From: Ascoidea asiatica JCM 7603
Taxonomy: Eukaryota > Fungi > Ascomycota
Direction: 5' to 3'
Assembly (NCBI GenBank): GCA_001600695.1
Contig: BCKQ01000006.1
Coordinates: 1,050,483 to 1,114,482, forward strand
Length of the DNA: 64,000 nucleotides
Below, one piece after another: positions 1 through 55,514 of the stretch. The number at the start of each line of letters is the position of its first letter. Within the stretch, counting starts at the first letter, position 1. The notes below the pieces were generated by a model, which made no database searches, was not told the origin of the DNA, and worked only from the letters and a program-made list of their open reading frames with translations. A program made the position numbers and the translations under genes.

Positions 1-2162
1 AAATCATTATTAAATGAAATGAATGAGTTAGCTACAAAATTCCAAAACTTGGAGAAAGATAGTCTATTGTTACAGACGGAACGGGAAAAACTAGACATAA
101 AAAATCAAAGCTTAGAGTCTTCATATGCTAAGGTGCTTAAACAAAACGATGCTCTTCGTGCTGAGAATTCTTCGATTCAAGAGTCAAATGTTCAATGCTT
201 ACCGGCCACGACTGGCAAGGTAATTCCAAAAACTATTGTAGTTGACGATAAAGTTTCTTCTCCACACGAAGAAAGAGTTGAAAATAATTCTTTCTTTAAT
301 TCCAAATTTGCCATTTTAAACAATGAAAATGCTTCTTTAATCAGAACTAATAAAGAGATGAAACTCAAGGTAGTAGATCTATCTGACAGATTAGAAAATT
401 TTAGTTCCCGGATAAAAGCCTTAGAATCTGATAAAGTGGAATTGAACACAAGGCTTAAGTCTCTTCTGGAAGAGAATTCTAAGATGTTTATATTGTCTTC
501 TGAAAATACTTCGCTTAGTAAACTTAATAAGGAAAATGATTCCCAGATTCATGAGCTATCTAAAGAACTAAACTTACTCAAAACAGAGAAAAATACTCTA
601 TTAACGGAATTAAAAGAAGGCAAAGTTCAGGCTGAAAATAAAGATTTAAGGGATTCCAATCAAAGCATTTCAGCAGATTTGCAAAAACTTAAAAATGATT
701 ATAGTAATGTTCAGCTTGATAATGATTCTTTGAAGAAATTGAATTGTGATGCTTTAAGGAAGGCAAAGGAAATAGAGACCAAGAATTTCTCTTTATCTGC
801 TGAGTTTGAGAAACTTAAAAAGGTGAATAATTCTTTGAATGAAACATACACCAAAGTGAAACATGAGATTGAACTGTTGACTAATATAAATAATTCAATA
901 AAGCAGGAGAATTTATCTTTATTGGAAGAAAATAAACAAATATCTTCCATATTAAAGGAAATAAGAGCGCAAAATACATCGTTAATAAAAGAAAACAATG
1001 AAATGAAGTTAGAAATTATAGAGGCTAAAGATCAAAAGAGTGTTACACTAGAGGAGGTATCTTCAATCAAATCGAAACACTATCTCTTGTTGAAATCCAA
1101 GAACGATATTTCAGCAGAAAACTTATTATTGAAGAAAACAATAAATACGCTCAAAATGGAAACTCAATCTTTAACAGGATTGAGTTTGGCTGCTAATAAT
1201 AAAGCAAAACTGATACTGCAATCAAATGAGGAAATGAAAGAGAAAATAGATTCTTTATCTAATTCAAACAATCGGATCTTATTAGAAGTTGAAATATTAA
1301 AGAAGGAAAATACTGAAGTGAAAGCCGAAAATCATTTATTAACTGAGGTTAGCAATGAAACAAAATCGAAATTGATTGAAATAGAGAAAGAAAAAACAGT
1401 AATGGATATTAAGATTAATGAAATAAACGTGAAAAATACTTCATTATTAAACTCAATTAACTCAGAAAAACTTAGAAGTGAGTCATTGATTAATAGTAAT
1501 AGTGAAATTTCTGCAATTGTAAAAGATCTCAAGAGTGAGAATATTATACTAGCACAGGAAAAGAAAGATCTTAAGCAGGAAAATCATACTTTTGCTCAAA
1601 ATAACAAAGCTTTAATGACTAAAATAAAAGAAATCGAGACAGAAAATGCTTCCATATTGGCTAAGAAGAATGATATTCAACTATTAGTATTTGAGCTTCA
1701 GGAAAGTATATCTTCTATGTCAAGATCTAATGATAAGATCAAAATTGAAAACGATTCATTGAAGGAAAAGAATCATGAAATGTCCTCACAGATTATCAAA
1801 CTTCAGGAAAGCAGTGCCTTGTTAATCGAAGAAAACGAAGAACTTTTGGTGAAGTTGTCTGAATATAAATCTCAAAATGCCTTATTAGTACAAGAACAAA
1901 TTAGTAAAGTCTCGGAAATTCAAAAATTGACTAATGAGAACACAAAATTATGTGAGGGAAAAACTAAAGACACTTCTGAGCTCTTAGAAATTGGTAAGAA
2001 ATTTTCAACATTATCCATTGTAAAAGAGAAGCTTTCAAGTCATAATAACGAGATAGAAATGCAGAATAAATCATTATTAAATGAAATGAATGAGTTAGCT
2101 ACAAAATTCCAAAACTTGGAGAAAGATAGTCTATTGTTACAGACGGAACGGGAAAAACTAGA
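1..2162 (+). repeat. Intragenic direct repeat in NUM1 with a 2067-bp (689-codon) period
   Basis: Bases 1-95 are identical to 2068-2162; diverged protein similarity continues beyond (KLDIKNQSLESSYAKV vs KLDLKHQNLETSYIRV). Confidence 0.9.
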
Positions 2163-4026
2163 TTTAAAACATCAGAATTTAGAGACCTCATATATTCGGG
2201 TAATCAAAGAAAATGAGGATCTCAAGGATAAAAACACTTTACTGCTAGAACCAAATAATAAATCTGCTAACATAAATAGTACTCAGGTATTGTCAAAGTC
2301 TATTTCCATCAAAGAAGGCAGTGATCGGGAAGTCCCTTCACAGAATGTTGATATTTCTAAAGACTTATTAACTGGTGATTCTTTCTATTCTATGGATAAA
2401 GATTATGAGATGGGTTTGAAAATTAAAAATTTGGAGGATAAATATGATGCTTCAATAAAGCAAATAAATGAACTAAAAAAATATAAGAATTCAGTGATTG
2501 AAAAAGTTCGTGAAATCGAGTCCCACAATGTTTCATTATTGAAAGAAAATAAAAAAATTAAGTCACGAATTGAGGAGGTTACTGCATTAAATGAAAAAAA
2601 CAAAAATGTAGCCGCTGATTCAATTCAAAAATTAGCTGAAATGGAATCTACAAGCCAAACAATTGATAAATTATCCAAAAAAGATGCTAAAGATGATATT
2701 ACAAAGGAATTTATAATAAACAATGCTCAAAAATTCAATTTAATTTGTGTTCCAATGAAATTTTTTATCGCAACCACAATTTCTAGATCTCCAGATCCTA
2801 ATAATGTTGTAGTAGTGCCAACAACTTATTATAACAAACTTTCTAGATACGAAGCATTGAATATAGAAAAAGTTCCTCTTGAAGAGTTTAGAAGTCATGC
2901 CAAAAACCGTGGATTTGTGTTAACTCCTATAGTTGATTTGTCTGATATTGGGTCTCAAAACAAAGATGGAGCCAAAAAATTGTTAAAAATCAATTCATCA
3001 GTACCTCCCGGTGTTAATATCTCAAAGCCTTTAAAATCATCCCTTAGGTCACCAAGTGTTGATCAAAGAAATGCATTGGAATTCAAATCTAGAACAGCGC
3101 CTACAACACCAATTCAACATTCAAAAATGGGTAAAGAATTGAATAGTATCTCTCCTCCTCATAATATACATCACGAATCTCATCTTGGACCAGATGAGGG
3201 TCATTCTCTTATTTCATCGATGCAAGATGGACTCGATTTTACGTTTATTAAACCGCCAATTCCTTCCAATACGTTAACTCATATGAATTCGAACAATAAA
3301 TCCATTATTGACGATAATGCATCTATCCTACAGCAATCATCACAAAGTATTGTTGAATCAAAAATGAGTGAAAACATGAGCACAGTAGCAGAAGGCATAT
3401 CTATCAGTAGTGATATTTCGTTAAATGAACCGAATATTATAGGAGCTATAACTCAAACAGTAATTGGTGAATTTCTTTATAAATATTACAGAAGATTAGG
3501 GCCTTTGTCTGTTATATCTGAAAATCGTCACGAACGTTATTTCTGGATTCATCCATATACTTTAACTTTATATTGGTCAGAAAATAATCCTGTATTTGGA
3601 GATCCTGCCACAAATAAAACCCGTGCATTTGCTATAGTTGCAGTTGAAAGTGTAGAGGATAATAATCCACTTCCACCTGGGCTATACCATAAAAGCATTG
3701 TTGTTTATTCGCAAAATAAGCAAATTAAGATAACATGCCCATCAAAATTAAGACATAATATATGGTATAATTCTTTAAGATATTTGATTGAAAAAGGATC
3801 AGTTCCTCCAGGTATTCAGGCAAATCAGGATAATTTGTTAAGGCCTAATTCTCTGCCCTTGAAAACACATAAACAACTAAGTCAATGTCCTCATTCAAAT
3901 CTGATTGGGTATAATCTGGATGGTGAAGAATTAACCAAACGTGGTAAAAGGGGTACTTCTCACACTGCTAAAGGAACAAAAATGCCTAAAAGTTCCAGTT
4001 TTAATAGGTTATCAACTTTTAGATAG
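1..4026 (+). CDS. NUM1: Cortical dynein/mitochondria anchor Num1-like protein, 5'-truncated by the window (long coiled coil, C-terminal PH domain)
   Basis: Frame is open from base 1. Long E/K/N/L heptad coiled coil, then SLNEPNIIGAITQTVIGEFLYKYYRR...RHERYFWIHPYTLTLYWS...VEDNNPLPPGLYHKSIVV...RHNIWYNSLRYL, the Num1/ApsA/Mcp5-type PH domain. Confidence 0.9.
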   Translation, partial: KSLLNEMNELATKFQNLEKDSLLLQTEREKLDIKNQSLESSYAKVLKQNDALRAENSSIQESNVQCLPATTGKVIPKTIVVDDKVSSPHEERVENNSFFNSKFAILNNENASLIRTNKEMKLKVVDLSDRLENFSSRIKALESDKVELNTRLKSLLEENSKMFILSSENTSLSKLNKENDSQIHELSKELNLLKTEKNTLLTELKEGKVQAENKDLRDSNQSISADLQKLKNDYSNVQLDNDSLKKLNCDALRKAKEIETKNFSLSAEFEKLKKVNNSLNETYTKVKHEIELLTNINNSIKQENLSLLEENKQISSILKEIRAQNTSLIKENNEMKLEIIEAKDQKSVTLEEVSSIKSKHYLLLKSKNDISAENLLLKKTINTLKMETQSLTGLSLAANNKAKLILQSNEEMKEKIDSLSNSNNRILLEVEILKKENTEVKAENHLLTEVSNETKSKLIEIEKEKTVMDIKINEINVKNTSLLNSINSEKLRSESLINSNSEISAIVKDLKSENIILAQEKKDLKQENHTFAQNNKALMTKIKEIETENASILAKKNDIQLLVFELQESISSMSRSNDKIKIENDSLKEKNHEMSSQIIKLQESSALLIEENEELLVKLSEYKSQNALLVQEQISKVSEIQKLTNENTKLCEGKTKDTSELLEIGKKFSTLSIVKEKLSSHNNEIEMQNKSLLNEMNELATKFQNLEKDSLLLQTEREKLDLKHQNLETSYIRVIKENEDLKDKNTLLLEPNNKSANINSTQVLSKSISIKEGSDREVPSQNVDISKDLLTGDSFYSMDKDYEMGLKIKNLEDKYDASIKQINELKKYKNSVIEKVREIESHNVSLLKENKKIKSRIEEVTALNEKNKNVAADSIQKLAEMESTSQTIDKLSKKDAKDDITKEFIINNAQKFNLICVPMKFFIATTISRSPDPNNVVVVPTTYYNKLSRYEALNIEKVPLEEFRSHAKNRGFVLTPIVDLSDIGSQNKDGAKKLLKINSSVPPGVNISKPLKSSLRSPSVDQRNALEFKSRTAPTTPIQHSKMGKELNSISPPHNIHHESHLGPDEGHSLISSMQDGLDFTFIKPPIPSNTLTHMNSNNKSIIDDNASILQQSSQSIVESKMSENMSTVAEGISISSDISLNEPNIIGAITQTVIGEFLYKYYRRLGPLSVISENRHERYFWIHPYTLTLYWSENNPVFGDPATNKTRAFAIVAVESVEDNNPLPPGLYHKSIVVYSQNKQIKITCPSKLRHNIWYNSLRYLIEKGSVPPGIQANQDNLLRPNSLPLKTHKQLSQCPHSNLIGYNLDGEELTKRGKRGTSHTAKGTKMPKSSSFNRLSTFR

Positions 4027-4473
4027 ATTTCTAAATTTTTTTTTATTTGTTTACTTTATTTCTTTATTTTATTATTCATTTTACAATTTTATGTCAATAT
4101 TTAAAATGTTTTTACTATGTTGTAGTCTGGTTTTGAGCTACAGTAAAGAGCATCGAGAAAGAAAATTGGTTAAGAGTGCATTAGCTTTCTTAATTCAATC
4201 GCTCCTGAAGCCATTTCAAATTGATTCAAATATTTTAATTAGCAATGCCCGTGACCATACAGTATTTTAGTAGAGTACGGTAGTAACTGTTACTAAACTT
4301 AACAGTATCAAGTCACTTATTTAGACTTTTACAATAATTATAAGCTTGATAGCATTCATGGCTCTTTTATTGAAAAAAAAAACATATGTATATCTTGGGT
4401 CCATAGATAAGCAATTTTTATGATTATAAAAACTTCTGTTTCTAAGAAATACAGAATCTGAATATGAAACGCA

Positions 4474-6054
4474 ATGGCTCCTTCTCCTGTATTGTATGTC
4501 TTTAGTGATCTTATGAAACTTTTATTTTATCTTTCGATAACTGGAAACTAACCTTTTTTCTATTTTCATTCTTTGAGGTTTTGAATAGTCATAAGCTGAA
4601 TGATAATTTGTATGCTAATGTTTATAAGTACCCTATCAGTGTTAACCTGAATCAATCTCAATTTCCATCGCAAAGTTCAAATTATTCTCAAAATTATAAC
4701 AACAGGTATTCCAAAAATATGAATATAAATCAAAATTATAACAATGGCTTGAATAACTATCTTAATCAAAATGTAAATCAAAGCAAAATTAGTTTGGATT
4801 CAACAACTCCTTTAACTCCTTCATCAGCTTCTTCTTCTAGCAAGGACTTCACAAAGGAGTTAAATAATTCAGCAAGTAATGATGATTTTACAAATTATCC
4901 TTCAAGTGCTAATTCTCAAGAAACAAGTGATAATTTTGTTTTATTTAATTGGTTAAAGAAAATAAATTGCCCACAATATTATAGACTTTTTTGTGAAAAT
5001 GATATTCAAACTTTAGATCTAATTTTGAATTTAGATTATCAATTATTGAAAGAATTGGGAATTGAAAAAGTTGGTGATCTTATAATTTTTGAAAACTCAA
5101 TTGAAGAGTTGAAAAGTAAATCATTAAATGATCAGCTATTAAATAATAATAATAGTTTGTCTTCTAATAATAATATCATTCAAAATTTCATAAATGACTT
5201 TCAAAATAATACTCTCATTTCCTATAATAAAAATGTTAATGCAAAAAAAATAATCAAAACACCAACCTCTGAAACCAGCACAACTCCGACAAAAATAAAA
5301 TCGAATACTCCTTCAAATATATCCAATAAAAATGTTTCTTTCATTTTAGAAGACGGTTCTATTAAGACAATATCTGTGGATGGTTGCTATAACACTGACA
5401 CTATAATAAAAAGATTGTTGAAGTCTTTGAATATAAAAGACTCAACAGATAACTACAGATGCTATTATACAACAACTTCTACTTCTCCTGAGATTCATCA
5501 AATTCATGGAATTGAGTTGATGACAATTTGTCATTCCCAAACCAGGGAGGAAAAGCACAGATTAATTGTAATAAATGTTAAAAAACAGAAGACTCCAAAT
5601 AACTTACAAATTCTGAAATCAAACAATTTAAGATTCAGAACTACTTCAAATTTTGTTAATTCCAACTTTCTGAAGCAATTACCTCCTAATCCTACAATTA
5701 AAACTTTGTATGGCCAGAGGCCTCCAAGTGAATTAATATCGACAAATTTGGCAGAATATTTTCCTAATACCAATAAAAAGGATCTTAAAGAAATTATTAG
5801 AAATTCTGTAAGATTATCTAAAGCGTATTCTAGATTATCCATGTTTAGCGTGAATGATTTATCATCATTTAATTTTTCTTCCAATATCAGAAATTCAATC
5901 CGAGACTCTATAATTAGCTCATCTTCATCCAATTCTAGTTCAACAATTACAAACTTAACACTAAGAAATTCCATTGGTGACTTTTATTTGAAGTCAAACG
6001 CTAATAATAATTTTAGTGATGGCTCTCTCAATAATTTTACTAATAATATGAACG

Positions 6055-6100
<46 letters not shown>

Positions 6101-7235
6101 CACATTAACTAAGAAATCTAGTCTATCAGTTTATGGAAATGGATTTCTCAAACCCCTATCAACCCCTCTGGTACAATTCAGCCCTTCAATCAGATCACCA
6201 TTAAGCAATCGTCGTTTATCCATAATGACTTCAAATTTTGCTGAAAATGATGAAGATGGTTATAAAGAAGATATTGAATCTATAGATTTGGATTCATCTG
6301 AAGATTATTTTGACTCGACGTCCAATGTGGATGATTCAACGACAATTTTAGAAGATCTTTCTATCATAGAAGCTGCGAATAACAAATTGACTGGACCAAG
6401 TAAGTGGTCAAAGGGTTCTAAAATTGGATCAGGTAGTTTTGGATCTGTTTATCTTGGACTAGATTCCTTGACAGGAAAACTTATGGCAGTTAAACAAGTA
6501 GACCTTGTACCTATTGGGGAAGATTCGCATAAAAAAACCATGATTGATGCATTGCAACATGAGATGGGATTATTGAAAGAATTAAAGCATGAAAAAATTG
6601 TCCAATATCTTGGTTCATCTCAAGATTCCCAATTTGTTTATATATTTTTAGAATATGTTCCTGGTGGATCTGTTGCCTCGATGTTAAGTAGTTATGGAGC
6701 TTTCCAAGAACCTTTAGCAAGAAAATTTACTAGGGAGGTCTTATCAGGTTTAGAATACCTTCATTCTCAACATATCATTCATAGAGATATCAAAGGTGGT
6801 AATATTTTAATAGATCATAATGGATCTGTTAAAATCACGGATTTTGGGATTTCAAAAAAATATTTTCCATCAAAAGAGGATCCAATTTCCAATAAGCTGA
6901 ATGCCACAAAAAGAACGTCAATGCAAGGATCTGTTTATTGGATGGCACCAGAAATTGTAAATCAAACTGCGTCAACTGATCGAACAGATATTTGGTCAGT
7001 AGGATGCTTAGTTATAGAAATGCTAACGGGAATACATCCTTTTGCAAAACTAAATACTATGCAAGCAATATTTAGAATAGGTGGTAAAAATTCACCTGAA
7101 ATTCCTAAAAATGTTACTAATGACTGTAAAGATTTTCTAACTAAAACTTTTGTGATTGATTATAATAAGAGAGCTTCTTCTACTGAACTCTTGACGCATC
7201 CATTTATGAACACTTTGATTCTATCCAAACAATAA
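4474..7235 (+). CDS. STE11: MAP kinase kinase kinase Ste11 (SAM, Ras-association and kinase domains); probable short first exon 4474-4493 plus an intron
   Basis: SAM-like WLKKINCPQYYRLFCENDI, GQRPPSELISTNLAEYFP, kinase motifs GSGSFGSV, HRDIKGGN, DFG, SMQGSVYWMAPE. The track ORF starts at TTG. ATG 4474 + GTATGT donor 4494 splices in frame to TAG 4588 or CAG 4639. Confidence 0.93.
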
Positions 7236-10387: not shown

Positions 10388-11699
10388 TTATTTTTTTGGA
10401 GGATTGAATGTAATTTTTCTATTTTTCAATACAGTCCATTTAAATTTCTTTACCCAAACAGACATTAAATATAAGGATGATAAAACAATAATTGCTTTTA
10501 AACCAGCTTTTTTACGATCATCATGTTCAGGTTCTGCAGCCCAGTTTAAAAAAGTAGTCACATCTTTGGCCATTTGAGAAGTAGAAGCAGGAGTACCATC
10601 ATCATATTCAACTAAATCATCAAATAAAACTCTACCCATAGCAATTGAACCACCGGGAAAATAAGGATTATAATTGGAACCTTCTGGTAATACAACACCA
10701 GCAGGTGGATCATCAGGATAACCTGTTAATAATGAAAAAATATAATCACAAGCGCCATGTCTTGCTTTTACAATTAAAGATAAATCTGGAGGTAAGGCTC
10801 CTTGATTTGCAGCTCTTGCAGCTTGTTCATTTTCATAAGGACCAGGAATATAATCAGCTAATTTTCCAATTCTTTTTCTTGGTTTACCTTCATCATCAGG
10901 CTCATCATCATATTCTAATTCTTCAACCATATTTTTAACTTCTGAATTTGTATGAGATACACCTATTAAAGTTCTCCATGCCACTCTATCTAAAGAATGA
11001 CAAGCAGCACAAACTTCACGATAAACATGAAAACCACGACGGATTGATGCATGATCAAAAGTATCAAACATACCATTATGTGGCCAGTTAAAAGCAGGAG
11101 GGTGTAACCCATGTTCAGAAGCTGTCATTGCTTCTGCAGTATGAGAATCAGCATATAATAAATAAGCAGCGGATAAACCAGTAGCTCCAACAGTTGCTGT
11201 AACTATTTTTTTATAAATTGGAGTACTCTGTTGTTTTGCTGTAGTAGAAAAAGACCTCTAGTTAGGAAAAAAAACCAAAATAAAGAAAAATTGTTTGAAA
11301 GAATGTTAGTATTTATCCAAAAAAAAAAAGTTGAATTGAATTTAATTGATTTCATTTATTTTCCGGAAATGCTTATTTCATATATCTACTGCAATCGCCC
11401 AATAATTTTAAAGATAAATAATTTTGAGTATATTTAAATGAATATTTCTCTGAAGTTAATCCATTTTTTCAGTCTCCGAAATTCTTTAGATTATTTGAAA
11501 AAAAAATTTATTTCTCTTTCTTTTGTGTGGAAACTCATATTTCTTGAAATATAGTGGATATCATTTTGAATGAATTAAAAGTTTTTCTTTTTTAATTAGA
11601 TATTTTTTAAATAATTTTCCAAGTGTTTATTTGAAATATCAAGAATGATTAAAAACTTACAGCATTCAACTTGGCAGCAGCCCTCAAAGTTGGAAACAT
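10388..11699 (-). CDS. CYT1: Cytochrome c1; exons 11699-11661 and 11257-10388, intron 11660-11258 (403 nt); 302 aa
   Basis: Haem motif CAACH, PGGSIAM axial Met, C-terminal TM helix. Exon 1 encodes MFPTLRAAAKLNA; GTAAGT donor, TACTAAC branch point at 11311-11305, TAG acceptor; splicing restores the bipartite presequence in frame. Confidence 0.97.
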
Positions 11700-12118
11700 T
11701 TTGAATATTGAATATTGAATATGTGAATAGGAATATTTAAAATTCTTTTAAGAAAAACTGAAAAAAAAACTACAACATAAAAAGATTAATAGATATTGAA
11801 ATAGATAGAAATAGATATAGAAATATTTCAGTATCAAAAGATCAAAGAATCAGAATTTTACCGTATAATAAACTGGATAATCAGACAGTCCAGTAAGCAG
11901 TACAATAATAATAATAACAATAATGAAAGAAAGTAACTAAGTAAATTAGTAACGTTAAGTAAAGAAGTATTACTGTCCCAGTAGTACAACGGGTAGGCCC
12001 TGGAAAGAGTTATGGGCGGACCGTTCTGGATAGTGGTGCAGTAATAACGAAGCTCACTCGCTAATTAGCACTCTTGCAATGGCACAATTGTCTGAACAAT
12101 CCGCTTTTTGCAGGACGC

Positions 12119-12196
12119 GATTGGTCTGCCCGCGAGCTGGCCTCCTCCACTGCTGGGCACTAGGCTTTACCGCAGGATTTCTTGTCCATCCAATCA
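12119..12196. promoter_or_regulatory. Two CCAAT boxes (putative Hap2/3/4/5 sites) in the GC-richer CYT1 upstream region
   Basis: GATTGG at 12119-12124 and CCAATCA at 12190-12196, 420-500 bp upstream of a respiratory-chain gene. Confidence 0.5.
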
Positions 12197-12605
12197 CAGC
12201 CAGCTGATTTCTCATTCGGAAGATAGGTAATATGTTTCTTCTTGATGTGTGTTTATTTATTATGATACCGCTTTATACCTCAACTGTCGTTTTAAAATGC
12301 GTCTTGTAAAGCGTCGATTTCTGAGTATTCTTCGTCTGGTGTAGGTGCGAGTCTGTATTGTTATGTTATGTCTCTTCATTTTTTTTTGTTACTGGTCTAG
12401 TACTACCAGTACAACGCTTTAATGATAATACCATTACTCAACTCTTCAAGTTAAAAATACTCAAACTCAATAAACGAATTCATTTCTACAGATGAAATTT
12501 CAAATAAAAACTTTCCAATTTATTCATTGGTTATTAGAATTATATCAAATGGCTATATACTGATATGTAAATTTAAAGGAAACTCATGAGTTACACCTGT
12601 TTAAT

Positions 12606-13997
12606 CTACCATAAAGCTGCTGGAGTATAAACAGGAATAGCTACAGTAATACCATAACCTGTGGTTCCAACGGCCCATGCTGGTTTTGTTGGTTGAGTCC
12701 ATCCACTTGGTGAAGATGTAATAGTTGAAGAATGAGTGTATGTAGTTGTGTCAGTTCCTGTAGAAATACCATATCCACTACCATAAACATTTTGGTAAAT
12801 ATCAATCATATAATTTTTAACATATGCTGAATCTTTGTAAAAACTGAAATCTTCAACAGTAATATCGGATGGTAAAATATAATCACTACCTCTAATGAAA
12901 ACACCACTTCTAATTTGTTTAGTAGCACTTGAAGAAATTGCTGCAATTGATCCGCTAAAATTAGAAAATGTTAAACCACTAAGAGCAACAGCTCCTGAAG
13001 TTCCTGAAGAATTTTCCCAATATTGATTAATACTCAATCCATAACCTGTTTGATATCCATGAAAATTTTCGAAAAGACAATTTTTAACTGTTGAATCAGA
13101 TCCACCTGGATATGTTTTAATAAACATTAATTGATTTGTATAATATGAATTAACATTTCTAACATGCATATATGATATATCTGCATCTGATTTTAATGAT
13201 CCAATGGACATTCCATCCGCATTATTACAAATCATATTCTCAATTAATCCATGATGTGAAGGTGATTTAATTGAAACACATTCATCTTTATTAGTAACTT
13301 CACAATCATGAATATAATAATTTTTACCTGTGACATCAATACCATCAGTACCTCCTCTATTTGGTCCTCTGATTGTAAGATGATAAACTTCAACATTTTC
13401 AACACTATTCAAAACGAGATGAAAGGTTCTTGAATCAATTATAAATAAGTCATGAACTGCAGAATTTGTCATTCCTGTGATTCTTATTAATCTTGAAGCA
13501 CTAGCAACATATCCATTTGCTGCTCTATATTTATAACCATTACCTTGGATAGCACCTTTACCATTTGAGGAATACATTTCAAAATTATCAACATTTGCAA
13601 TTCTTATCATATCACTATGAGTAACAGTACCTGCACTATTTTTTTGATTGAAATCTCCATCATTATCAATATCAATCAAACCATCAATTTGAAATGCCCA
13701 ATTATCAACATTTGTTAATGCTAAATAGCTTGATAATTTCCAAGTTCCTTCAGGAATATATAATCTAGAATTTGATGTCTTTGCAACACAGCTGGTAAAT
13801 GCTTTATTGACTGCTGATGAAATATCACTTCCTGAAACCGCACCATAATCTGTAATATCACAAACTGTACTTTTCTCAGCTAATGTGGTTGTTGGACCAA
13901 CAGTTCCTGATAATCCATAAGTTTCACTTCTTTCTAAAATTTCAAGTGAAAAGGCTGTAGTAGCCAAAATTGAAAAAGTTAAAATACGATTTAACAT
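12606..13997 (-). CDS. Secreted GH28 rhamnogalacturonan hydrolase (RhgA-like)
   Basis: Signal peptide; LSGTVGPTT...VCDITDYGA N-terminus; catalytic region GGTDGIDV...EVTNKDECVSIKSP (the DE pair marks rhamnogalacturonases, vs DD in polygalacturonases); beta-helix repeats; intronless. Confidence 0.9.
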   Translation of the reverse strand: MLNRILTFSILATTAFSLEILERSETYGLSGTVGPTTTLAEKSTVCDITDYGAVSGSDISSAVNKAFTSCVAKTSNSRLYIPEGTWKLSSYLALTNVDNWAFQIDGLIDIDNDGDFNQKNSAGTVTHSDMIRIANVDNFEMYSSNGKGAIQGNGYKYRAANGYVASASRLIRITGMTNSAVHDLFIIDSRTFHLVLNSVENVEVYHLTIRGPNRGGTDGIDVTGKNYYIHDCEVTNKDECVSIKSPSHHGLIENMICNNADGMSIGSLKSDADISYMHVRNVNSYYTNQLMFIKTYPGGSDSTVKNCLFENFHGYQTGYGLSINQYWENSSGTSGAVALSGLTFSNFSGSIAAISSSATKQIRSGVFIRGSDYILPSDITVEDFSFYKDSAYVKNYMIDIYQNVYGSGYGISTGTDTTTYTHSSTITSSPSGWTQPTKPAWAVGTTGYGITVAIPVYTPAALW

Positions 13998-16612
13998 TCT
14001 AGAACTGAATAAAAAATTTAAGTAAAGGAGTGAATAAATGAATGTTTTTTTTTAACTTAGTCTAGTAATAATTGAACTTACTATAATATATTCAATTTCA
14101 ATCAAAAATCTAAATTTTAGTTGACCATTTCATTTGCTTTTATATAAAAAAAAAATAAATACCTTAATTAAATCATTTGACTTTATCTTTGGATTTACCA
14201 TAATTCTCTTTTGAATGTTTGCGTAAGTTAGTAAAACACATTAACATTTGGTATTGATATTTCAATTGTTTTATTATTATTAATAAAATCATAAACTCCA
14301 AAAACACCAATTTTAAAATATTCTCATAATGATTATTAGAGATTATTAACCCTGAAATTATCAATACTAATATTATTCATTTCATTCTTTTTCATTATTT
14401 AAGCGTAAAGTTATCATTATTTTCACCTCTCATTAAAAACAGGGAGAAATACAGAAGTTTCTATAATAAATTACAATAATTAAAAAGTTATAACTTTGGG
14501 GTGACATATTTTATAATTTAATGAAAGTCAAATCATTTTTCTTAAACTCTAACGTAACATTACTGTATCAGTTTCATCTACTTAGCGTTACAAGCCGTTT
14601 TCATAATTTTCTGAAACATCAAATAGAAGTTCTGATGCTTTAATCAAATATTTCAAATATTCTCAAGAAAAGTTGTTGGTTTATTTTGACAATCATTCTG
14701 ATTTCAATGAAAGCTCTAATATTCAAAGCACAGAAATAAAAAATGCCAATATTCAATTATCTCTTTTTTTCCCATCAACTGGAACCTAATAAAATATTGA
14801 ATAAAGAAATGTAATTCCAATAAAAAAATTTAAATTTTCAAATAGTTGTTTTCATGGAATTCAAAGTGAATCTATAAGGAGATTTTTTTTTAAAAAAAGG
14901 AATTGATCTTCCGCGTAGTATCTTTGCATTGCTCGATGTTACCAACATTGTCTCTACCAATAAAAGCATTACAATAAATGCTAGTCAAAAATGAAGATAA
15001 TATCAATTGTAAAATCGTATAAATATGAGAATCTGATATTTAAATCAATAAGTCTGCTCTATCTTAATTTGAATGGTAAATAAGAAAGAAAGAAATATTA
15101 ATGAAAAAATGTAAAAAGAAGAATGCTCAACAAAGCAATACTGAAAAGGCATTTTTCGACTAATTTATTCTTAATGCTTATAAGTATTTTCAATTCTCTT
15201 GGACACAAGATTGTAAGTTGCTTAAAGGTAAATATTTTTTAAAATTAATATCTTTATTTCAATTTTTGTGGAAGGACTTCGCCTAACTCAAAAAAATTCA
15301 AATAATTCTGTCATAGATAAAACTCAATTACTCCTAAACAATACATTAAATTTAATTTTTATTGCTTTAAAACTTAGGTATGATATGATAAGGAATATAA
15401 ACTAATCGTAATATTACGAATAAAAATTTGCTTCAGTTATTCTAATGACTGGATTATCGTATTTATAAATGTTTTGCCTTTTTTTAAAGCTATTGGGAAC
15501 CATATTTAAAACTAAAATACATGATATTAAGGATAATGTAACCTTTGCTTCTGATTAATAAGTTTGATATTAATAAAAAATAATTCTATTGAGTTAAAGT
15601 GTATTTTCACTTGCTTTATCGTTTTTAAAAAAATAAATAAATTTAGAAACGAAAAGTAAATTGAATTGTTCGAACTCTTTTCGATAATTGATTAATGACT
15701 TTTGACTATTTGATCACCTATTAAATAACTAAATATTGCAAGAGTAGTAGTATTTTCAAATTCTAAATGAGGTTTCTCATTCTGGATTTACCTCAGATAA
15801 TACAAAAAAATTTTTCTCTCTTAAGGATCAAAAAATACTATTGTAGAGTGATAAAATATTATCAGAATTTCGTATGAGAGTGGGCTATTGATCCTAATCG
15901 CGATTCCTACCAGTATAACTTCAAATCAAAATCAAAAAAAAAACAGAAAATCTTAGATTTAAGCTTTTATATATTCCTTTAGAATTATGAAAGAATTGTT
16001 TTAAGGATCAAACATAGCTCAACAAAACTGATCCCCATCTTACTAAGATACAGTAGAATGCAGTAACTTAACAAATAAAAATATCATTATTATTGTCAAT
16101 ATTTTGTATTTTCTTGAAAAAGCTGTTGATATTATTTGCTTCTAGGACCGATTTCGGAAAAAAATGTTTTGTTTGAAAACCGAATTCTGTAAAATAACAA
16201 CAAAGAAACTGAATTTAGAAGTCTTTTATTCTTTCTGATTCAATATTTCAATACTCAAGGAAAGCTTGAGTTAAAGTTTTTGTTTCGTAATTGTATTATT
16301 GTTTTTCAGGAGGCTTTGAAAACGCAGCTCCTACTAATATTATTAAGAGCATCCATAATTATGGTATCCAATAGTGATCTTATTGAGACCAGAAGTTCTT
16401 AATAGATATTTTTGAATCATTATTTCACTTGACAGACTATGAATAATTGTATTTTTAATCTGAGAGTTATGAGAGTTAAGTATTTGTTTGCCCGGAAATT
16501 CAAAAGAAATATTGTATAAATATAAAGGCCATTCAGTTATGGTTATAATAAAATGAAGTTTTTAAACAAATAACCTATTGAATATCAATAAAAAAAAAAA
16601 TAAATCGAAATT

Positions 16613-17635
16613 ATGAAATTTTCAATTGTTTCCATAACAGCTTTTTCTGTTTTACTTCAAAGGTCTTTAGCAGACACTTGCGCTGCAAATTATTATCAAT
16701 GTGGTGGTAAAAGTTGGACTGGTGCTACTTGTTGTAATTCTGGTTTCACTTGCGTTGTTGTCAATGATTACTATTCACAATGTCAAGAAGGAGGTGATAG
16801 TGACGATACAACTTCTGCAGCAGTCATAAGTTCTTCAGTTTCTTCAACTTCTCAAGAAGCGGTGACTAGCCTTTCAACATCTTCTGCTGCTGAAGTATCG
16901 ATTGCCAGTGATGATGTAGTTGAAGCGGCTGCAGTTTCCACATCTTCAACTAGTTCAAGCACTAGCTTTACTGTTTTCCCTGGTGGAAAATCTGGAAAAA
17001 CAACAACCAGTCGTTATTGGGATTGTTGCAAAGTAACTTGTGCTTGGTCTGGATACATGAACTCTAGTGCTCCTATAAGATCTTGTAAAGCTGATGGGGT
17101 AACAACAATTGATGATAACACTCAAAGTGGTTGTGTTGGTGGGGATGCTTATATGTGCTCGGATCAAGCTCCATGGGCGGTTACTGATAATTTGGCATAC
17201 GGGTTTGTTGCAGCAGCTGTAATGGGTGGAGATCAGGCTTCAGAATGCTGTGCTTGTTATCATTTGAAATTCACTTCGAGTTATTTTAGTGGTAAAGAAA
17301 TGGTTGTTCAAATCACTAATACTGGAAGTGAAGGTGATGATTTGACGGAAAGTAACTTTGAATTACAAATTCCAGGTGGTGGTGTTGGTTATTATACTGA
17401 AGGTTGTGCAACTCAATGGGATACATCTGTAAGTGGATGGGGTGAACAGTATGGTGGTGTTGATTCTGAATCAGAATGTTCTGAATTACCTAGTGCCTTG
17501 CAAGATGGTTGTGATTGGAGATGGGATTGGATGGATGGTGCTTCTAATCCAGATGCCACTTATGAAAGAGTTGTTTGTCCTACCGAAATCACTGATGTTT
17601 CAAAATGTATCAGAGATGATGAAGCCGATCTATAA
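16613..17635 (+). CDS. Secreted CBM1 - Ser/Thr linker - GH45 endo-beta-1,4-glucanase-family protein
   Basis: Signal peptide; CBM1 [13 protein letters not shown]...NDYYSQC; S/T-rich linker; GH45 motifs [31 protein letters not shown]. Confidence 0.95.
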
Positions 17636-18288
17636 TCTGCTTAGAAAAAGAGTATTGTCTAGTGAAGTTTATGCTTTGTTTCTAAATTTTCTTGTTTTTT
17701 TTTTTTTTTTATACTTTTTATATTACTGTGAAAATCTTTTCATTTCTAAAGTAGCAATTTTCCAATTAAAAGCTGGTTCTTTTAAAGAATGAATAATATA
17801 CTATTTAGGCATTTTAGAGGTATGGATTGTAAATATTCTCATAAGTTTTATTTATTTTTTTATATTTTTTTTTTTTTTTTTAACGAAAAACATTAAAGTA
17901 TGTAAAACTTTTTTTTTTTGAACCTTCCTTTTGAAGATGGGAGCGTCGGAATTACTGACTTAGGAATTCGTCATAATTAAAATAACTTTAAAATATCTCG
18001 GTTGGTGTAACGGTTAACTTTAACAATTAAATTGCTGTTTATCATTTGCTAATTGAATATTGAAAATTATTGATAAATCAAGGAATGCTTTCCAATAATT
18101 GATAGCCAAATTTTATTACAAGGTTAGTTAAATTTCAATTACAATTTTGAGAAAAATTTAATTAGACATTAATTTGTTAAGTATCTTTTAAAACTAAGAC
18201 TAATACCCTGTTTATATTACCTGAAAAGCACAATTTTCTAGATTTTGATAAAAAAGCTAGTGAAAAAAAAGAGAAGATTATATAAATT

Positions 18289-18984
18289 ATGAGTCTTTTC
18301 CCAGATATCGAGGATCAAATTACTTCTGCTATTCCAGGATACAATATAGCAACATTTTTATTTGATGAATATGCTGGCGACAATTTGCAAACAAAAGATC
18401 CATTTGTTGAAGTTTTACCAAATGGGGATGAAAAAAAAAGAAGAGCACCAACTGGTTCGAACAAAGAAGAGATAAAAGTTTGGAAAAAAATTCAAAAAAA
18501 GGCTTGGGTTCATGATCGATGTATGTGTGGATGTTATCCAATTGATTGTGGATTAGGATTGGCAACAATAATAAGTATAGTTCCAGTTTTAGGACCGATT
18601 TTAATTTATGTTGTTCATGCTAGATTTATTTCGTTTGCTGATCAAATTTTACATTTACCTTCAAAAGTTGTTGCAAAAATGTATGCCAATATTTTGTTTG
18701 ATTTTTTAATAACATTGCCGCCAATTATTGGTACATTATTAGGATATTTGAATGCATGTTCTACGAGGAATGCAGCAATTATTCATACTGAAATGAAAAA
18801 AGTGTGCTTAAAAAGATTAGAAATGCAAAATTTAATTCCAAATTCAAAGCAAACTAGATTTCAGCCAATGAATATAGATGATTCAAATGCATTTTTAGAT
18901 ACAAATAATTCAAAAAATAAGAAAAAAAAGTCAGCAAAATATTTGAATTATAAACAATTTGATCAAGAAGCAGGTATTAGATGA
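18289..18984 (+). CDS. DUF4112-like membrane protein
   Basis: DPFVE motif, AWVHD...GLATIISIVPVLG and KMYANILFDFLITLPPIIG hydrophobic hairpins match the recalled DUF4112 pattern. Confidence 0.7.
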   Translation: MSLFPDIEDQITSAIPGYNIATFLFDEYAGDNLQTKDPFVEVLPNGDEKKRRAPTGSNKEEIKVWKKIQKKAWVHDRCMCGCYPIDCGLGLATIISIVPVLGPILIYVVHARFISFADQILHLPSKVVAKMYANILFDFLITLPPIIGTLLGYLNACSTRNAAIIHTEMKKVCLKRLEMQNLIPNSKQTRFQPMNIDDSNAFLDTNNSKNKKKKSAKYLNYKQFDQEAGIR

Positions 18985-19209: not shown

Positions 19210-19812
19210 TTACCAATTTGAGTTATTGTTATCATCATTTCCTCCATATGAATCGCCTCCCCTTGAAGAAGAACCATAAGAATTATCATTATCGTTGCTA
19301 GAAGAGCCACCATACGAATTTTCACCTCTTGAAGAACTTCCATAAGAGTTATCATTATCGTTAGAAGAAGAACCTCCATAAGAATTGCTACCTCCCTTTG
19401 AAGAAGAACCATAAGAATCATCATCATCTCTAGAAGAAGAATTACTACCATATGAGTCACCTCCTCTTGAAGAGGAACCATAGGAGTCATTACTATTACT
19501 ATTGCCACCATAAGAATCGCCTCCACTCGATGAAGAACCGTAAGAATCATTTTTCGATGAAGAACCGTAAGAATCATTTTTCGATGAAGAGCCGTATGAA
19601 TCACTGGAGTCATTATTACCTCTTGAAGATGAACCATAGGAATTGTTAGAATCTCCTCTTGAAGATGAACCATACGAATTGTCAGAATCTCCTCTTGAAG
19701 ATGAACCATAAGAATCGTTAGAGTCATTATTGTCTCTTGAGGAAGAACCATAAGAATCATTATTGGATGATCTGTTGTTATCATCATCATTATCACGACC
19801 GAATAAACCCAT
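19210..19812 (-). CDS. Ser/Gly/Asn/Asp-rich disordered repeat protein (16 SYG motifs), hydrophilin-like
   Basis: AAAAATG start context; [D/N]SYG[S/G]SS(R/K)G repeats with synonymous variation between units; TATA-like element near 20005. Confidence 0.8.
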   Translation of the reverse strand: MGLFGRDNDDDNNRSSNNDSYGSSSRDNNDSNDSYGSSSRGDSDNSYGSSSRGDSNNSYGSSSRGNNDSSDSYGSSSKNDSYGSSSKNDSYGSSSSGGDSYGGNSNSNDSYGSSSRGGDSYGSNSSSRDDDDSYGSSSKGGSNSYGGSSSNDNDNSYGSSSRGENSYGGSSSNDNDNSYGSSSRGGDSYGGNDDNNNSNW

Positions 19813-23013: not shown

Positions 23014-23232
23014 AGGGCCTGGTTTTCTCTCAATGAAAATAAATCCGCATATATGTACCACAAAATTGGTTTCTTTTATGAAAATCAATAAAATAGTTTA
23101 AATAACTTGAAAGACATCAAATCTTGGTATGTATTTTTGTTTGAAAAACTCAATTTTGAGAGAGACAATCCAATGAACATTGCAAAACAATAATAACTAA
23201 TATATAATTTAGTTTCGAGTTATTTGAATATA

Positions 23233-25212
23233 ATGAAAAACTATAACTGTTATTTGAAAATAATGCTTATTAATGTTGGTCTTATCATGCAAAAGCTACC
23301 GAAAATACAGTCAAATCGAATTATTTGTAATCCTTTCTATAACAAATATACTTTGTCAACCTATTCAAAAATTAACTATCAAAAAATAAAAGAATTAAAG
23401 AACTATCAAAACATTACAAAGAATAATCATGTATTTACAAATATTAAAGACTTTAAAAAAAAAGATAATTTAAAAGATTTACCAGCTCATCTTATTTTTC
23501 AAAAATTGGGCTTTATTTCTCAATCTTCGTCTGGTTTGATTAATTGGTTGCCGACTGGTTTGAGAGTTCTTAGGAAGATTGAAAATATTCTCAATAAAAG
23601 AATGTTGGAAATTGGCTGTGAAGAGGTTTCTTTAACTTCTTTGAGTCCGGAGTCTTTATGGAAAAAAACAAATAGATGGTCGAATAATGAATTGTTTAAA
23701 TTGAAAGATTTGAAGAATTCAAATTACTGCTTAGCAGCAACTTGTGAAGAAGAAATCACGAATATAGTAAAATTGAACTTAGTTAACTCTTACAAAAATT
23801 TACCAGTTCTACTCTATCAAATTTCAAGAAAGTACAGAGATGAAAAAAGACCAAGAGCAGGTTTACTAAGAGCAAGAGAATTTTTAATGAAAGATGCTTA
23901 TTCTTTTGATTTGAATGAAAAAAATGCAATTATTACCTATAAAAAATTTGTTTCTGCATATAAAAAAGTATTCAAAGATTTAAAAATCCCTTTTGTTTCA
24001 GCAGAAGCAGATTCCGGTGATATAGGCGGAAATTTATCTCATGAATGGCATTATATTCACGATATAGGCGAGGATACTTTATTCCAATGTGATAATAGTG
24101 ACTGCAATTCAATTTCAAATTCCGAAAGAACTGTTTCCTTCCCAAAAGATGTTACTTATTTTTCAGAAAATGCAAGCGTTAGTTATTTCTTAACAAATGA
24201 TAGAAATACTTTAATTGCAGCTTATTATCCTTCTGAAAGAAAATTGATGCCTTCTTTCATAAAAAAAGAGATTCCAGATATAAATGTATCGGAAAAAACA
24301 ATAATATCGGATAGAGAAATCATAAACATATTTCAAAAAAGACAAAATAATGATGAATTATCTTCAAAACTAGAAATTATAAGAGTCATGGATGTTAGAG
24401 TGAAACCAGAAACAATCTTACCTGATTTTCCCAATGAGATTAAATTTCAAAGATCTTCGTTTCATACGATTAATGAATTAAGTATAATTGAAGCAGTTGA
24501 AGATGAAATTTGTGATAAGTGTTCAAAAGGATCGTTGAAATCTTTTAAATCAATTGAAGTTGGACATACATTTTATCTTAGTGATAGATATTCTAAACCA
24601 TTAGAATTAAAGACTATTAATGAAGAAGGTGAAATTAATTTCATTAGTATGGGGTGTTATGGTATTGGAGTTTCTAGATTGATCGGAGCAATTGCTGAGA
24701 TAACAAAGGATGAAAAGGGATTAAACTGGCCATCTGTTATTGCCCCATATCATTTAACTCTTATTTCAACAATCTATAATGAAGACATAGGAGCTTATGG
24801 ATATAATGATGAATTAAGAAAAACAATTGAGGATATTTATGAAAAATCATATGAAAATGGAATTGAGGTTATAAAAGATTTAAGGAATAATAGTAAATAC
24901 CCACTTTCATACAAGATTAGAGAAAGCAAAATGATGGGAATACCATTGATTTGCATAATTGGCAATAAATTTCTTGAAAAAAAACAAATTGAAATTGAAG
25001 TCAGGTCTAGATTTTTAGGTGAACTTAATAAAGAGACCAAAGTGAATGATGAAAAAGAAGAAGAAAGGGAATTGAGTTATGCTAAATTGTTCGATCTGAA
25101 AAAAGATGACTGGAAATGGGAAATTGTGACTGACAAGTATGGTAATGAAAAGCATTACGTTGATGTTAATTATTATATTGATGTGGTGAGAATTTTATTG
25201 AAGGATTTGTGA
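23233..25212 (+). CDS. AIM10: Mitochondrial prolyl-tRNA synthetase (start codon uncertain; first ATG at 23233)
   Basis: Class IIa motifs YQISRKYRDEKRPRAGLLRAREFLMKDAYSF, ADSGDIGG, IEVGHTFYL, MGCYGIGVSRL, WPSVIAP. Confidence 0.92.
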   Translation: MKNYNCYLKIMLINVGLIMQKLPKIQSNRIICNPFYNKYTLSTYSKINYQKIKELKNYQNITKNNHVFTNIKDFKKKDNLKDLPAHLIFQKLGFISQSSSGLINWLPTGLRVLRKIENILNKRMLEIGCEEVSLTSLSPESLWKKTNRWSNNELFKLKDLKNSNYCLAATCEEEITNIVKLNLVNSYKNLPVLLYQISRKYRDEKRPRAGLLRAREFLMKDAYSFDLNEKNAIITYKKFVSAYKKVFKDLKIPFVSAEADSGDIGGNLSHEWHYIHDIGEDTLFQCDNSDCNSISNSERTVSFPKDVTYFSENASVSYFLTNDRNTLIAAYYPSERKLMPSFIKKEIPDINVSEKTIISDREIINIFQKRQNNDELSSKLEIIRVMDVRVKPETILPDFPNEIKFQRSSFHTINELSIIEAVEDEICDKCSKGSLKSFKSIEVGHTFYLSDRYSKPLELKTINEEGEINFISMGCYGIGVSRLIGAIAEITKDEKGLNWPSVIAPYHLTLISTIYNEDIGAYGYNDELRKTIEDIYEKSYENGIEVIKDLRNNSKYPLSYKIRESKMMGIPLICIIGNKFLEKKQIEIEVRSRFLGELNKETKVNDEKEEERELSYAKLFDLKKDDWKWEIVTDKYGNEKHYVDVNYYIDVVRILLKDL

Positions 25213-25488
25213 TTAGACTATATTTAAAATTATAAATTTTATTGTGGGTTATTTAATATACATTGTAAATAATTAAGTGGACTAAAATATAATAAGATTG
25301 TATATAAAGCGTTTTATGGATATCAATGATACCAAATAAAATAAACAAGAAGTTGCATGATTTACATAAGAATAAACAACTTTAAATACTTCTTTCATTC
25401 CTTTTCCTTCAATTTTTTTGCTTTATTTGAATTTTTTTTCTTTGGGGGGTAGAATTACTTCAAGTGATTTTCAACAAGTTATCCAATA

Positions 25489-25824
25489 TCATTTGGAAAA
25501 AAACTTAGTGAATAGTTTTGAAATGACATGTAAACCAATGACAGAAAAAATAAAACCAACAGCCAAAAATAAGACTACCAAAGGATCAACTCTGAAACCT
25601 TGAGCTTCATCAGTATATAATTTAAGCATGGTAGCACTAGAGCCACCAGCACCTACAGATCTTGTAGATGCTGGTGTTTGATTGGCTTTTTTGTCTTGAG
25701 CAGCACGTCTCTTTTGCAAAGTTCTTTGGCCACCAGGGACATCGGAAGACTAAATAAAAACTTAGTTAGTTTGGAGAAAATGATAAGACAGAAATGGAGC
25801 TTAGGAGAGATAAAGACATACCAT
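25489..25824 (-). CDS. SBH1: Sec61 translocon beta subunit; exon 1 is the ATG only (25824-25822), intron 25821-25750, exon 2 25749-25489; 87 aa
   Basis: ATG|GTATGT donor, AACTAAC branch point, TAG acceptor give MSSDVPGGQRTLQKRR...LKLYTDEAQGFRVDPLVVLFLAVGFIFSV. Confidence 0.95.
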
Positions 25825-26323
25825 TATTATATAGGGCTTGACGAAAATAAAATATAGAAAGACACAGAATATATAGGACTCCTGTTTCTTATTATTATAT
25901 CTTTATATGATAATAATAATGATGATATAAATGATGATAATAATAATAGAATAGAATAGTGTTTTTATTGCAAAGTACTTAAGATAATATTTCATACATT
26001 TAATTCCCACATCGCTATTACCTATTTCTCAATGTAAGACGCTCACTTGACAGCTCAGCAAGCATCCTGGTACCAGAAGTACACGGTACTGTGTAATTTG
26101 TAATATGCCCTGAAAAATTTAACGATTGTCTCCCTGCACCAGATTGGAAAGTTATGGGTAAGCATAATAAAGATGGCGAAAATAGCACTGAAGAAATATT
26201 CAGACTAAACATCATTGAATTATTACATTTTGACTTAATTGTTTTTTCATAATTGCTTCTCAATTTCTGCTTCTATTTCTCAATTTACTCTTCTGTATTC
26301 TCTCAATAATTTGGTTGTTTATT

Positions 26324-54500: not shown

Positions 54501-55514
54501 GATATGGTGTTTATGACTAAATGTGAGGAAGTGTTTGAGAACCTTATGAGAATTGTTCAAAACAAATTCAAGTCTAGAATTACACTTAAACATTCTGATA
54601 GTACAGGTATGTTGTTAGGTTTTAATCTTGAAAAGATTTTTAACACAGATGGATCAATTAAACAAATGAAATTATCCTTAGAAGATAATATCACAAAGTG
54701 GTGTAAAGCTAATAATTGTATTAATGATAAAAGACGTACTCCAATTTCGAGTGGCTTTTATTTCAAATTGGATGATGAAAAATTGGCTTATGATGCAGAT
54801 ACTTTAGCAAACTGTATAAAGAATTACAGATCAATTGTTGGATCGTTATTGTCTATAAGAAATAGAGGTCGTCCAGATATTTCTTATGCTGCTCAATATA
54901 TGGCAAAATTTTGTGAATTTCCACACCCAAAATTATTTAAAGAATTAGAAAATATAATGAATTATTTATATTTCTCAAAAGAAAAAGGTTTGATATTTAA
55001 AGATTATAGTAATATTAATTCAATTAACATTTATTGTGATGCAGATCTTTCAAGTGATCCAAATACTAGAAAGAGTAGTATCGGTATTATATCAAAGTTG
55101 GGAAATAATTGAAACATTTCATGGCGTTCTAAAGTTACTCCTCTTGTATGTACTTCATCAACTAAAGCTAAAATTCAGGGATTGCTGATGGCTTGTAAAG
55201 AAGCAAGAAGGTTAAAAGAAATCAAGTTATTTTTAAATTATGATGTTAACCAAAGTATTGTTGTTTATTGTGATAATCAAGCTGTAATAACTTTATCAAA
55301 AAAAGAAAATGTGAACTCTAGGAACAAACACTTTGATATCAGATACCATGCCATTAAAGAAACTATCACCAATGGTACAATTCCATTAGTTCATATGAAA
55401 TCTGAATTAGTTTTGGCAGATATTTTAACAAAACCTTGTTCAAGAAATGTATGCAAAACTGTTGGTGGAAAGATTTTGAATTATTAATTATTTCAAATAA
55501 AAATTAAGGAAGTG

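Follow-up and report, generated by a model that had tools for sequence, protein, structure and literature searches.

Budding yeasts are usually viewed as having shed the plant-wall toolkit of filamentous fungi. A 'differential retention' of such genes has been documented so far mainly in Geotrichum, whose GH45 and AA9 genes were described as 'specifically retained ancestral genes' (Morel et al., PMC4479816, PMC5596469), that is, genes that fall outside the Pezizomycotina clade, occur patchily among yeasts and show distances that are not unusually short (PMC4479816). Within family GH45, the closest described systems are endoglucanase V (EGV) of Humicola insolens (Cel45A; structures 2ENG, 3ENG and 4ENG) and the proteins SOR3-5 of the weevil Sitophilus oryzae, which carry the replacement Asp121Glu and are xyloglucanases (Busch et al., PMC6509783). 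Within family GH28 they are rhamnogalacturonase A of Aspergillus aculeatus (1RMG) and the RhgA-F enzymes of A. niger. Here we analyse a stretch of 64,000 nucleotides from Ascoidea asiatica JCM 7603 (contig BCKQ01000006.1, positions 1,050,483 to 1,114,482; 'the window'), in which a GH28 gene and a CBM1-GH45 gene related to these systems lie head to head.

On balance we favour, as somewhat probable, the reading that these are two native yeast genes for attack on the primary plant wall, retained and duplicated: old lineages with an adjacency specific to this lineage, and not recent imports. Ancestral ascomycete genes would have survived in a small number of yeast lineages associated with plants or wood and have been duplicated in the present one, where the head-to-head arrangement would also have arisen, within a rearranged block. 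The rhamnogalacturonase, with its complete catalytic cluster, and the GH45 protein, with a Glu as proton donor, would both act on the primary wall. The pair is made up as follows.

12606-13997, minus strand: gene for the predicted GH28 endo-rhamnogalacturonan hydrolase (463 aa, intronless; PF00295)
13281-13346, minus strand: codons of its catalytic cluster D218, D221, D238 and E239 (D177, D180, D197 and E198 of 1RMG)
13998-16612, no strand: divergent AT-rich spacer of 2,615 bp with no detectable gene
16613-17635, plus strand: CBM1-linker-GH45 gene (340 aa, intronless; PF00734 at aa 27-54, PF02015 at aa 132-332)
17021-17023, plus strand: codon of the catalytic base Asp137 (Asp10 of EGV), in the conserved YWDCC motif
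17360-17362, plus strand: codon of Glu250 at the proton-donor position (Asp121 of EGV), in NFELQ where other sequences have HFD or QFD

Both open reading frames (ORFs) are unbroken from ATG to stop and lie exactly where the first-pass annotation had placed a divergent pair. Its enzyme names also agree with the Pfam assignments, namely GH28 for the one protein, with 1RMG as best structure, and CBM1 plus GH45 for the other. Both N-termini, read by eye from the sequence, are hydrophobic and signal-peptide-like, MLNRILTFSILATTAFS being one of the two. Of the words sampled from 12300-17900, 97-98% occur in three DNA runs from two studies, possibly the source sample itself; no RNA run matched the stretch. 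As had been proposed, the host is a budding yeast, since the top named matches of CYT1, the gene on the left flank of the pair, all come from Saccharomycotina; the best of them is Ascoidea rubescens at 84% identity, and there is no close annotated relative. Both translations would also stand under a variant CUG code, as neither gene of the pair has a CTG codon.

The GH28 protein scores 97.8 bits against PF00295 (cut-off 22.9). Its best solved structure is rhamnogalacturonase A (1RMG; E=3.7e-77, 263 bits, aa 29-458), followed at a distance by a xylogalacturonase (1.9e-20) and by polygalacturonases (1e-7 or worse), and its best database matches are Ambrosiozyma proteins (50-51%) and then Pezizomycotina proteins named 'rhamnogalacturonase A/F' (42-49%; Fusarium 48-49%). 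The motifs TDGID and NKDEC align to 1RMG. The four catalytic residues, including the 'DE' pair typical of rhamnogalacturonases, are invariant across 54 homologs, and the fold signature of the Aspergillus enzymes extends over aa 29-458, with a similar Ser/Thr-rich C-terminal tail. The window protein differs from 1RMG in that the match, at 263 bits, is distant, the residue equivalent to D156 is an Asn (a position that varies across the family) and the host is a budding yeast. In the GH28 tree it lies far from the genome's own polygalacturonases. The sequence thus identifies it as a rhamnogalacturonan hydrolase and not a polygalacturonase, with endo-hydrolysis of the rhamnogalacturonan I (RG-I) backbone as the predicted activity.

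The second gene encodes a signal-peptide-like N-terminus, a six-Cys N-terminal CBM1, a Ser/Thr-rich linker and a GH45 domain that scores 226.7 bits against PF02015 (aa 132-332) and has 5H4U as its best solved structure (E=2.9e-72). With EGV it shares the subfamily-A domain, the equivalents of Tyr8 and Asp10 and the cysteine pattern. The two differ in the position of the CBM1, which is C-terminal in the solved entry 6MVI and N-terminal in the window protein, and in the replacement of His119 by Asn, an insertion in the lid loop and the proton donor itself. The canonical donor Asp121 is absent and Glu250 stands in its place, so that the carboxylate is kept; on this ground we class the protein as a Glu-variant GH45 and not as a canonical cellulase. 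The lid loop insertion reads SEGDDL; an Asp is present there, but its alignment to Asp114 is ambiguous.

The Glu donor is rare. Only two of the genome's eight GH45 copies have it, the window copy and its paralog on contig 28 (L007), and among 128 GH45 homologs it recurs in 10 Curculionidae sequences and nowhere else. The best 150 representatives of 1.84 billion proteins added a single further case, doubtfully aligned. The yeast Glu pair and the weevil Glu clade have five rare residues in common (Glu250, S133, T245, S311 and A315), nearly exclusive to them, whereas control groups share between none and two. Ser133 replaces Thr6, and Ser311 turns 'DNP' into 'SNP'; both changes are found in the SOR3-5 clade, as are Ala315, a Trp in 'RW' and a remodelled lid loop that lacks the usual 'DL'. 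The weevil sequences differ in being animal genes with an intron and without a CBM1, nested in the beetle clade in free trees and about 50% identical to the window protein. Because Asp121Glu and four other rare residues are common to the window protein and the weevil xyloglucanases, xyloglucan is most likely the preferred substrate of the window GH45 and a reasonable prediction; together the Glu donor and the four residues would shift its preference from cellulose to xyloglucan. The earlier suggestion of a primary-wall beta-glucan as target is plausible in this light.

We also considered that the Glu-type GH45 might be inactive, or might serve as an expansin-like wall-loosening or binding protein. 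Its canonical donor is replaced, the lid loop that bears Asp114 is remodelled by an insertion, and expansin-like DPBB proteins are also encoded in the genome. Yet Glu retains the carboxylate, weevil enzymes with the same Asp121Glu replacement are active xyloglucanases, the protein still has the base Asp, an unchanged YWDCC motif and the signature of the fold as a whole, and the variant is conserved in two paralogs that are about 77% identical. Loss of activity is in our judgement improbable. As a natural fungal case of the Asp-to-Glu donor variant that marks weevil xyloglucanases, the window GH45 offers a handle on substrate specificity in this family. The closest relative of the Glu-type pair outside this genome is a 247-aa GH45 on a 3.3-kb contig of GCA_015689235.1, which has an Asp donor and lacks a CBM1; that assembly may be an animal genome or a yeast contamination of one.

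To place both genes among their relatives we relied on a careful 61-row tree for the GH45 topology, the quick tree being sub-optimal (a constrained tree was better by 46 log-likelihood units), and on quick trees with Shimodaira-Hasegawa-like approximate likelihood ratio test (SH-aLRT) support for GH28. All eight GH45 copies group with sequences of Geotrichum, Galactomyces and Saccharomycopsis, and none of them falls in the Pezizomycotina, Mucorales or beetle clades. The rhamnogalacturonase, its paralog and two Ambrosiozyma proteins form a clade (SH-aLRT 95-98), Ambrosiozyma being the only other yeast in which this enzyme was matched. This yeast clade lies outside two Pezizomycotina clades (SH-aLRT 100 each), one of which includes early-branching Pezizomycetes, and is therefore a lineage at least as old as the crown Pezizomycotina; the Aspergillus rhamnogalacturonases are separate from it. 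GC content at third codon positions (GC3) is 0.112 and 0.191 in the two genes, within the native range set by the window (mean 0.176, standard deviation 0.049).

Both window genes show the pattern by which retained ancestral genes were defined in Geotrichum (PMC4479816). As with the GH45 and AA9 genes of G. candidum, they are of filamentous type, intronless, patchy among yeasts and outside the Pezizomycotina, and the Geotrichum GH45 proteins fall in the same yeast cluster as those studied here. The present genome differs from Geotrichum in its larger number of copies (eight GH45 and seven AA9), in having rhamnogalacturonases and PL1 lyases as well, and in the Glu donor of the window GH45.

The first-pass annotation had raised the possibility of horizontal acquisition, to be judged from phylogenies of both proteins. 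We ran these, and both proteins fall in yeast-only clades outside the Pezizomycotina, with native GC3. A recent transfer of one or both genes from a filamentous fungus, whether of the Pezizomycotina or the Mucoromycota, would fit the Fusarium proteins that come next after Ambrosiozyma among the rhamnogalacturonase matches, the Mucorales proteins among the full-length GH45 matches that have the same N-terminal CBM1 layout, and the absence of the block from the CYT1 site of Ascoidea rubescens. It does not fit the position of either protein, neither of which is nested in a donor clade, the identities of 40-55%, with 45-55% for the best matches outside yeasts, or the native base composition; the intervening block, moreover, also holds native genes for CCT, a DUF4112 protein and a repeat protein. 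We regard such a transfer as very improbable.

The rest of the genome sets these two genes in context. This AT-rich genome of 20.3 Mb has at least 37 loci for plant-wall enzymes, an unusually large number. Eight are GH45, all with an N-terminal CBM1, and GH28 amounts to about nine (six polygalacturonases, two rhamnogalacturonases and one split match). Beside these stand seven AA9 lytic polysaccharide monooxygenases, five PL1 lyases, two CE8 loci and one GH43 locus, with no GH10 locus found in the genome; CBM1 domains number 14 and occur also in CBM1-CE8, CBM1-GH5 and CBM1-DPBB proteins. With so many wall-enzyme loci, the plant-, wood- or gallery-associated lifestyle that had been suggested for this yeast is plausible. 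The statement that both families are uncommon in budding yeasts stood only in part. It fails for GH45, already known in Geotrichum, Saccharomycopsis and Komagataella, and for GH28 as a family, of which this genome alone has six ordinary polygalacturonases; it holds for the rhamnogalacturonase subtype, whose only other yeast match is Ambrosiozyma. Both enzymes stand out, the rhamnogalacturonase for its rarity in budding yeasts and the GH45 as a variant of note with its Glu donor. Set against the usual view of budding yeasts, this genome has retained and expanded a broad toolkit of GH45, AA9, PL1, GH28 with the rare rhamnogalacturonases, CE8 and many CBM1 modules, which extends the picture of differential retention.

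We then asked how the two genes came to be neighbours. The features that frame them are these.

10388-11698, minus strand: CYT1, which flanks the pair on the left and anchors the synteny comparison (exon 2 at 10388-11128, preceded by a short exon 1 at about 11660-11698; PF02167)
18289-18984, plus strand: DUF4112 gene, right flank (PF13430, 95 bits)
23224-29197, plus strand: collinear block of an aminoacyl-tRNA synthetase (aaRS)-like gene (23224-25212), Sec61-beta (about 25492-25764, minus strand) and NAT1 (26315-29197), assigned by Pfam

The two flanks are those named before, as PF02167 and PF13430 bear out, and the 5' intron of CYT1 has visible GTAAGT and TACTAAC signals. In Ascoidea rubescens, CYT1 directly adjoins the block of the class-II aaRS-like gene (52%), Sec61-beta (91%) and NAT1 (51%; tblastn/tblastx), which is kept in the same order and orientation in the window. 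Here CYT1 is inverted and 11.5 kb away from the block, with five genes in between (the rhamnogalacturonase, the GH45, DUF4112, a repeat protein and the CCT chaperonin). An empty site at CYT1 in relatives had been suggested as a check. The junction of CYT1 with the aaRS-like block in A. rubescens was indeed found, but there is no clean empty site: since native genes also lie inside, the intervening block is a rearrangement and not a clean insertion. Four other CYT1-bearing contigs were uninformative, leaving A. rubescens as the only informative comparison. As the pair is inside a block rearranged relative to A. rubescens, and one specific to this lineage, relocation into a cluster is possible. 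The repeat-protein ORF (19210-19812, minus strand, 200 aa), between DUF4112 and CCT, consists almost wholly of SYG/SSS/DN repeats and is without a match in Pfam.

On the other side of the pair, between the 3' end of the rhamnogalacturonase gene and the CYT1 promoter, we observed a single-copy GC-rich island at 11990-12330, where a 500-bp bin reaches about 41% GC and the surroundings about 25%. It contains no ORF longer than 53 aa, no tRNA and no Rfam match even at E<10, and neither strand shows excess folding energy; the island is a possible unannotated RNA gene or relic.

Each gene of the pair has exactly one close paralog, the rhamnogalacturonase on contig 4 (L016, 70.6%) and the GH45 on contig 28 (L007, 76.6% over the catalytic domain), and both paralogs are unpaired, among unrelated genes. 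Segmental duplication of the pair was rejected, the flanks of L016 and L007 having nothing in common with the window. Nor was linkage seen in other yeasts: the Ambrosiozyma contig with the rhamnogalacturonase has no GH45, and no GH28 lies beside the Saccharomycopsis or Geotrichum GH45 loci, although this is a weak test, none of the three being a close relative. Two side observations concern other copies. On contig 4 (1119627-1125661) L016 is divergent, across 1.37 kb, from a gene for a 1,088-aa Zn2Cys6 factor (Zn_clus and Fungal_trans_2); encoded beside a presumed target, the factor is a candidate regulator of pectin or rhamnose use. On contig 22 (23228-29092) the GH45 genes L004 and L005, whose catalytic domains hardly differ, form an inverted duplication: they diverge across about 3 kb, in the same geometry as the window pair.

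Several observations weigh against our preferred reading of two native, retained genes brought together in this lineage. Neither tree resolves its deep branches, and the rooting of the GH28 tree cannot be relied on; a transfer in the distant past, or between yeasts, is possible. Ambrosiozyma, the one other yeast with the rhamnogalacturonase, is a yeast of ambrosia-beetle galleries. A topology uniting all Glu carriers in one clade is not rejected by an approximately unbiased (AU) test (p=0.54 with the acid loop removed, p=0.89 with 128 rows), although the backbone is weak and the test has little power. The position of the genes also counts here: cross-family pairs of wall-enzyme loci within 5 kb were observed twice where 0.28 are expected for random placement over 20.3 Mb (Poisson P=0.03), and some selection for co-location is possible.

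The first three of these points bear on the alternative that the rhamnogalacturonase came by ancient or yeast-to-yeast transfer, or that a gene passed between yeast and beetle, giving the Glu-type GH45 and the weevil xyloglucanase clade a shared ancestry. For the latter speak the five rare residues in common with the weevil Glu clade and the place of the yeast Glu pair (the L006/L007 lineage) in free trees, on the backbone beside the beetle clade; published trees likewise put Saccharomycetales beside the Phytophaga GH45s (PMC6509783). For the former speaks the restriction of the enzyme, among yeasts, to this genome and Ambrosiozyma, but the proteins of the two are only about 50% identical and sit on long stems. 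The weevil Glu clade, for its part, nests inside the beetle clade in free trees (support 99 in the quick and 83/83 in the careful tree), and beetle GH45 genes share a conserved intron (PMC6509783), which argues for one beetle acquisition. Chrysomelid xyloglucanase-type sequences also have the ASNP change, pointing to convergence, and a chrysomelid sequence with this 'SNP' carries a lid-loop Glu at about the Asp114 position; intron and 'SNP' change together favour convergence. We consider either transfer unlikely, much as we do loss of GH45 activity. Marginally less doubtful, but still unlikely, is a reading in which the pair forms a dedicated tool against the primary-wall matrix, an RG-I hydrolase joined by a xyloglucan-specialised GH45 that has undergone the same switch as in weevils (Asp121Glu, Thr6Ser, DNP to SNP and a remodelled lid), by convergence or by transfer between a gallery yeast and a weevil.

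As to position, the significance of the clustering depends on the space available. When the genes are confined to about 8 Mb, the two observed pairs compare with 0.71 expected (Poisson P=0.16), and this assumption is reasonable because wall-enzyme loci are biased towards contig ends: the terminal 100 kb of the contigs, 21% of the sequence, contain 15 of the 37, an enrichment of about two-fold. The two pairs are that of the window and a GH45 on contig 7 one gene away from a PL1 lyase. In a genome so rich in wall-enzyme loci the adjacency of two such genes is less remarkable; it may be fortuitous or weakly selected, with regulation shared through the spacer a possibility, and the head-to-head arrangement is in itself a modest curiosity. 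The contig 7 pair is part of a second, loose cluster (687158-707821). Its genes encode, in this order, a short-chain dehydrogenase/reductase (SDR), a Zn-alcohol dehydrogenase, CBM1-GH45 (L002), a 2-hydroxyacid dehydrogenase, PL1, an NSUN2-like methyltransferase, a repeat protein, another PL1, which duplicates the first in inverted orientation and has the same N-terminus, and a secreted DPBB protein.

The GAL1-GAL10 genes of Saccharomyces cerevisiae are a divergent pair with shared upstream regulatory sequences, and it had been proposed that the window genes are likewise a co-regulated module. Elements in the spacer would switch on an RG-I hydrolase together with a xyloglucan-type GH45, and the two enzymes would loosen the primary-wall matrix of pectin and hemicellulose. 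As in pairs of the GAL1-GAL10 type, the genes are head to head and functionally related, both predicted substrates being matrix polymers of the primary wall. The spacer is long and single-copy in the genome and ties with 55112-57722 (2,609 bp) for the longest intergenic gap of the window. It had been called gene-free, and we found in it no ORF longer than 63 aa, no tRNA and no Rfam match at E<0.1. Mild clustering of wall-enzyme loci (the P of 0.03 above) points the same way, with the GH45 near a pectinase on contig 7 and a GH45 and AA9 genes within 22 kb on contig 19.

Other properties of the locus tell against such a module. Pairs of the GAL1-GAL10 type have spacers below 1 kb; here the spacer measures 2.6 kb, the linkage is not conserved, with both paralogs unpaired and no such pairing in the other yeasts inspected, and the P value for clustering rises to 0.16 once the contig-end bias is allowed for. 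Upstream of each gene there are TATA-like elements, near 14141 for the rhamnogalacturonase (about 145 bp from its ATG) and near 16515 for the GH45 (about 98 bp from its ATG), which puts the core promoters about 2.3 kb apart; the spacer is a long divergent intergenic region rather than a compact bidirectional promoter. Its two halves have no motif or conserved block in common, and blastn of the spacer against 21 other wall-enzyme promoters returned low-complexity A/T matches only. In a k-mer enrichment analysis of low power (15 promoter groups against 18 controls) the best p was 3e-4 over 1,400-6,800 tests, and nothing was significant. No shared CGG/CCG pairs of Zn2Cys6 type were seen; a single CCGATTTCGG stands 465 bp upstream of the GH45. 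We therefore treat co-regulation as a tentative idea, possible but on the unlikely side, and keep to the reading of two native genes whose adjacency is specific to this lineage.

A few further loci in the genome deserve mention. On contig 26 (76409-76963) the second CE8 match has an in-frame TAG and is a possible pseudogene or intron-containing gene. The split GH28 match on contig 2 (1983957-1984587) falls into two neighbouring parts, one matching profile positions 57-171 and the other 178-282. The two overlap by a few bases and so apparently differ in frame; a third divergent GH28 with a frameshift or an intron is one possibility. The seven AA9 genes are an unusual number for a budding yeast. 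Two of them form a divergent pair 19-22 kb from the GH45 gene L003 on contig 19 (191385-213995), and on contig 1 (173552-177170) about 3 kb separates two AA9 genes that share a strand.

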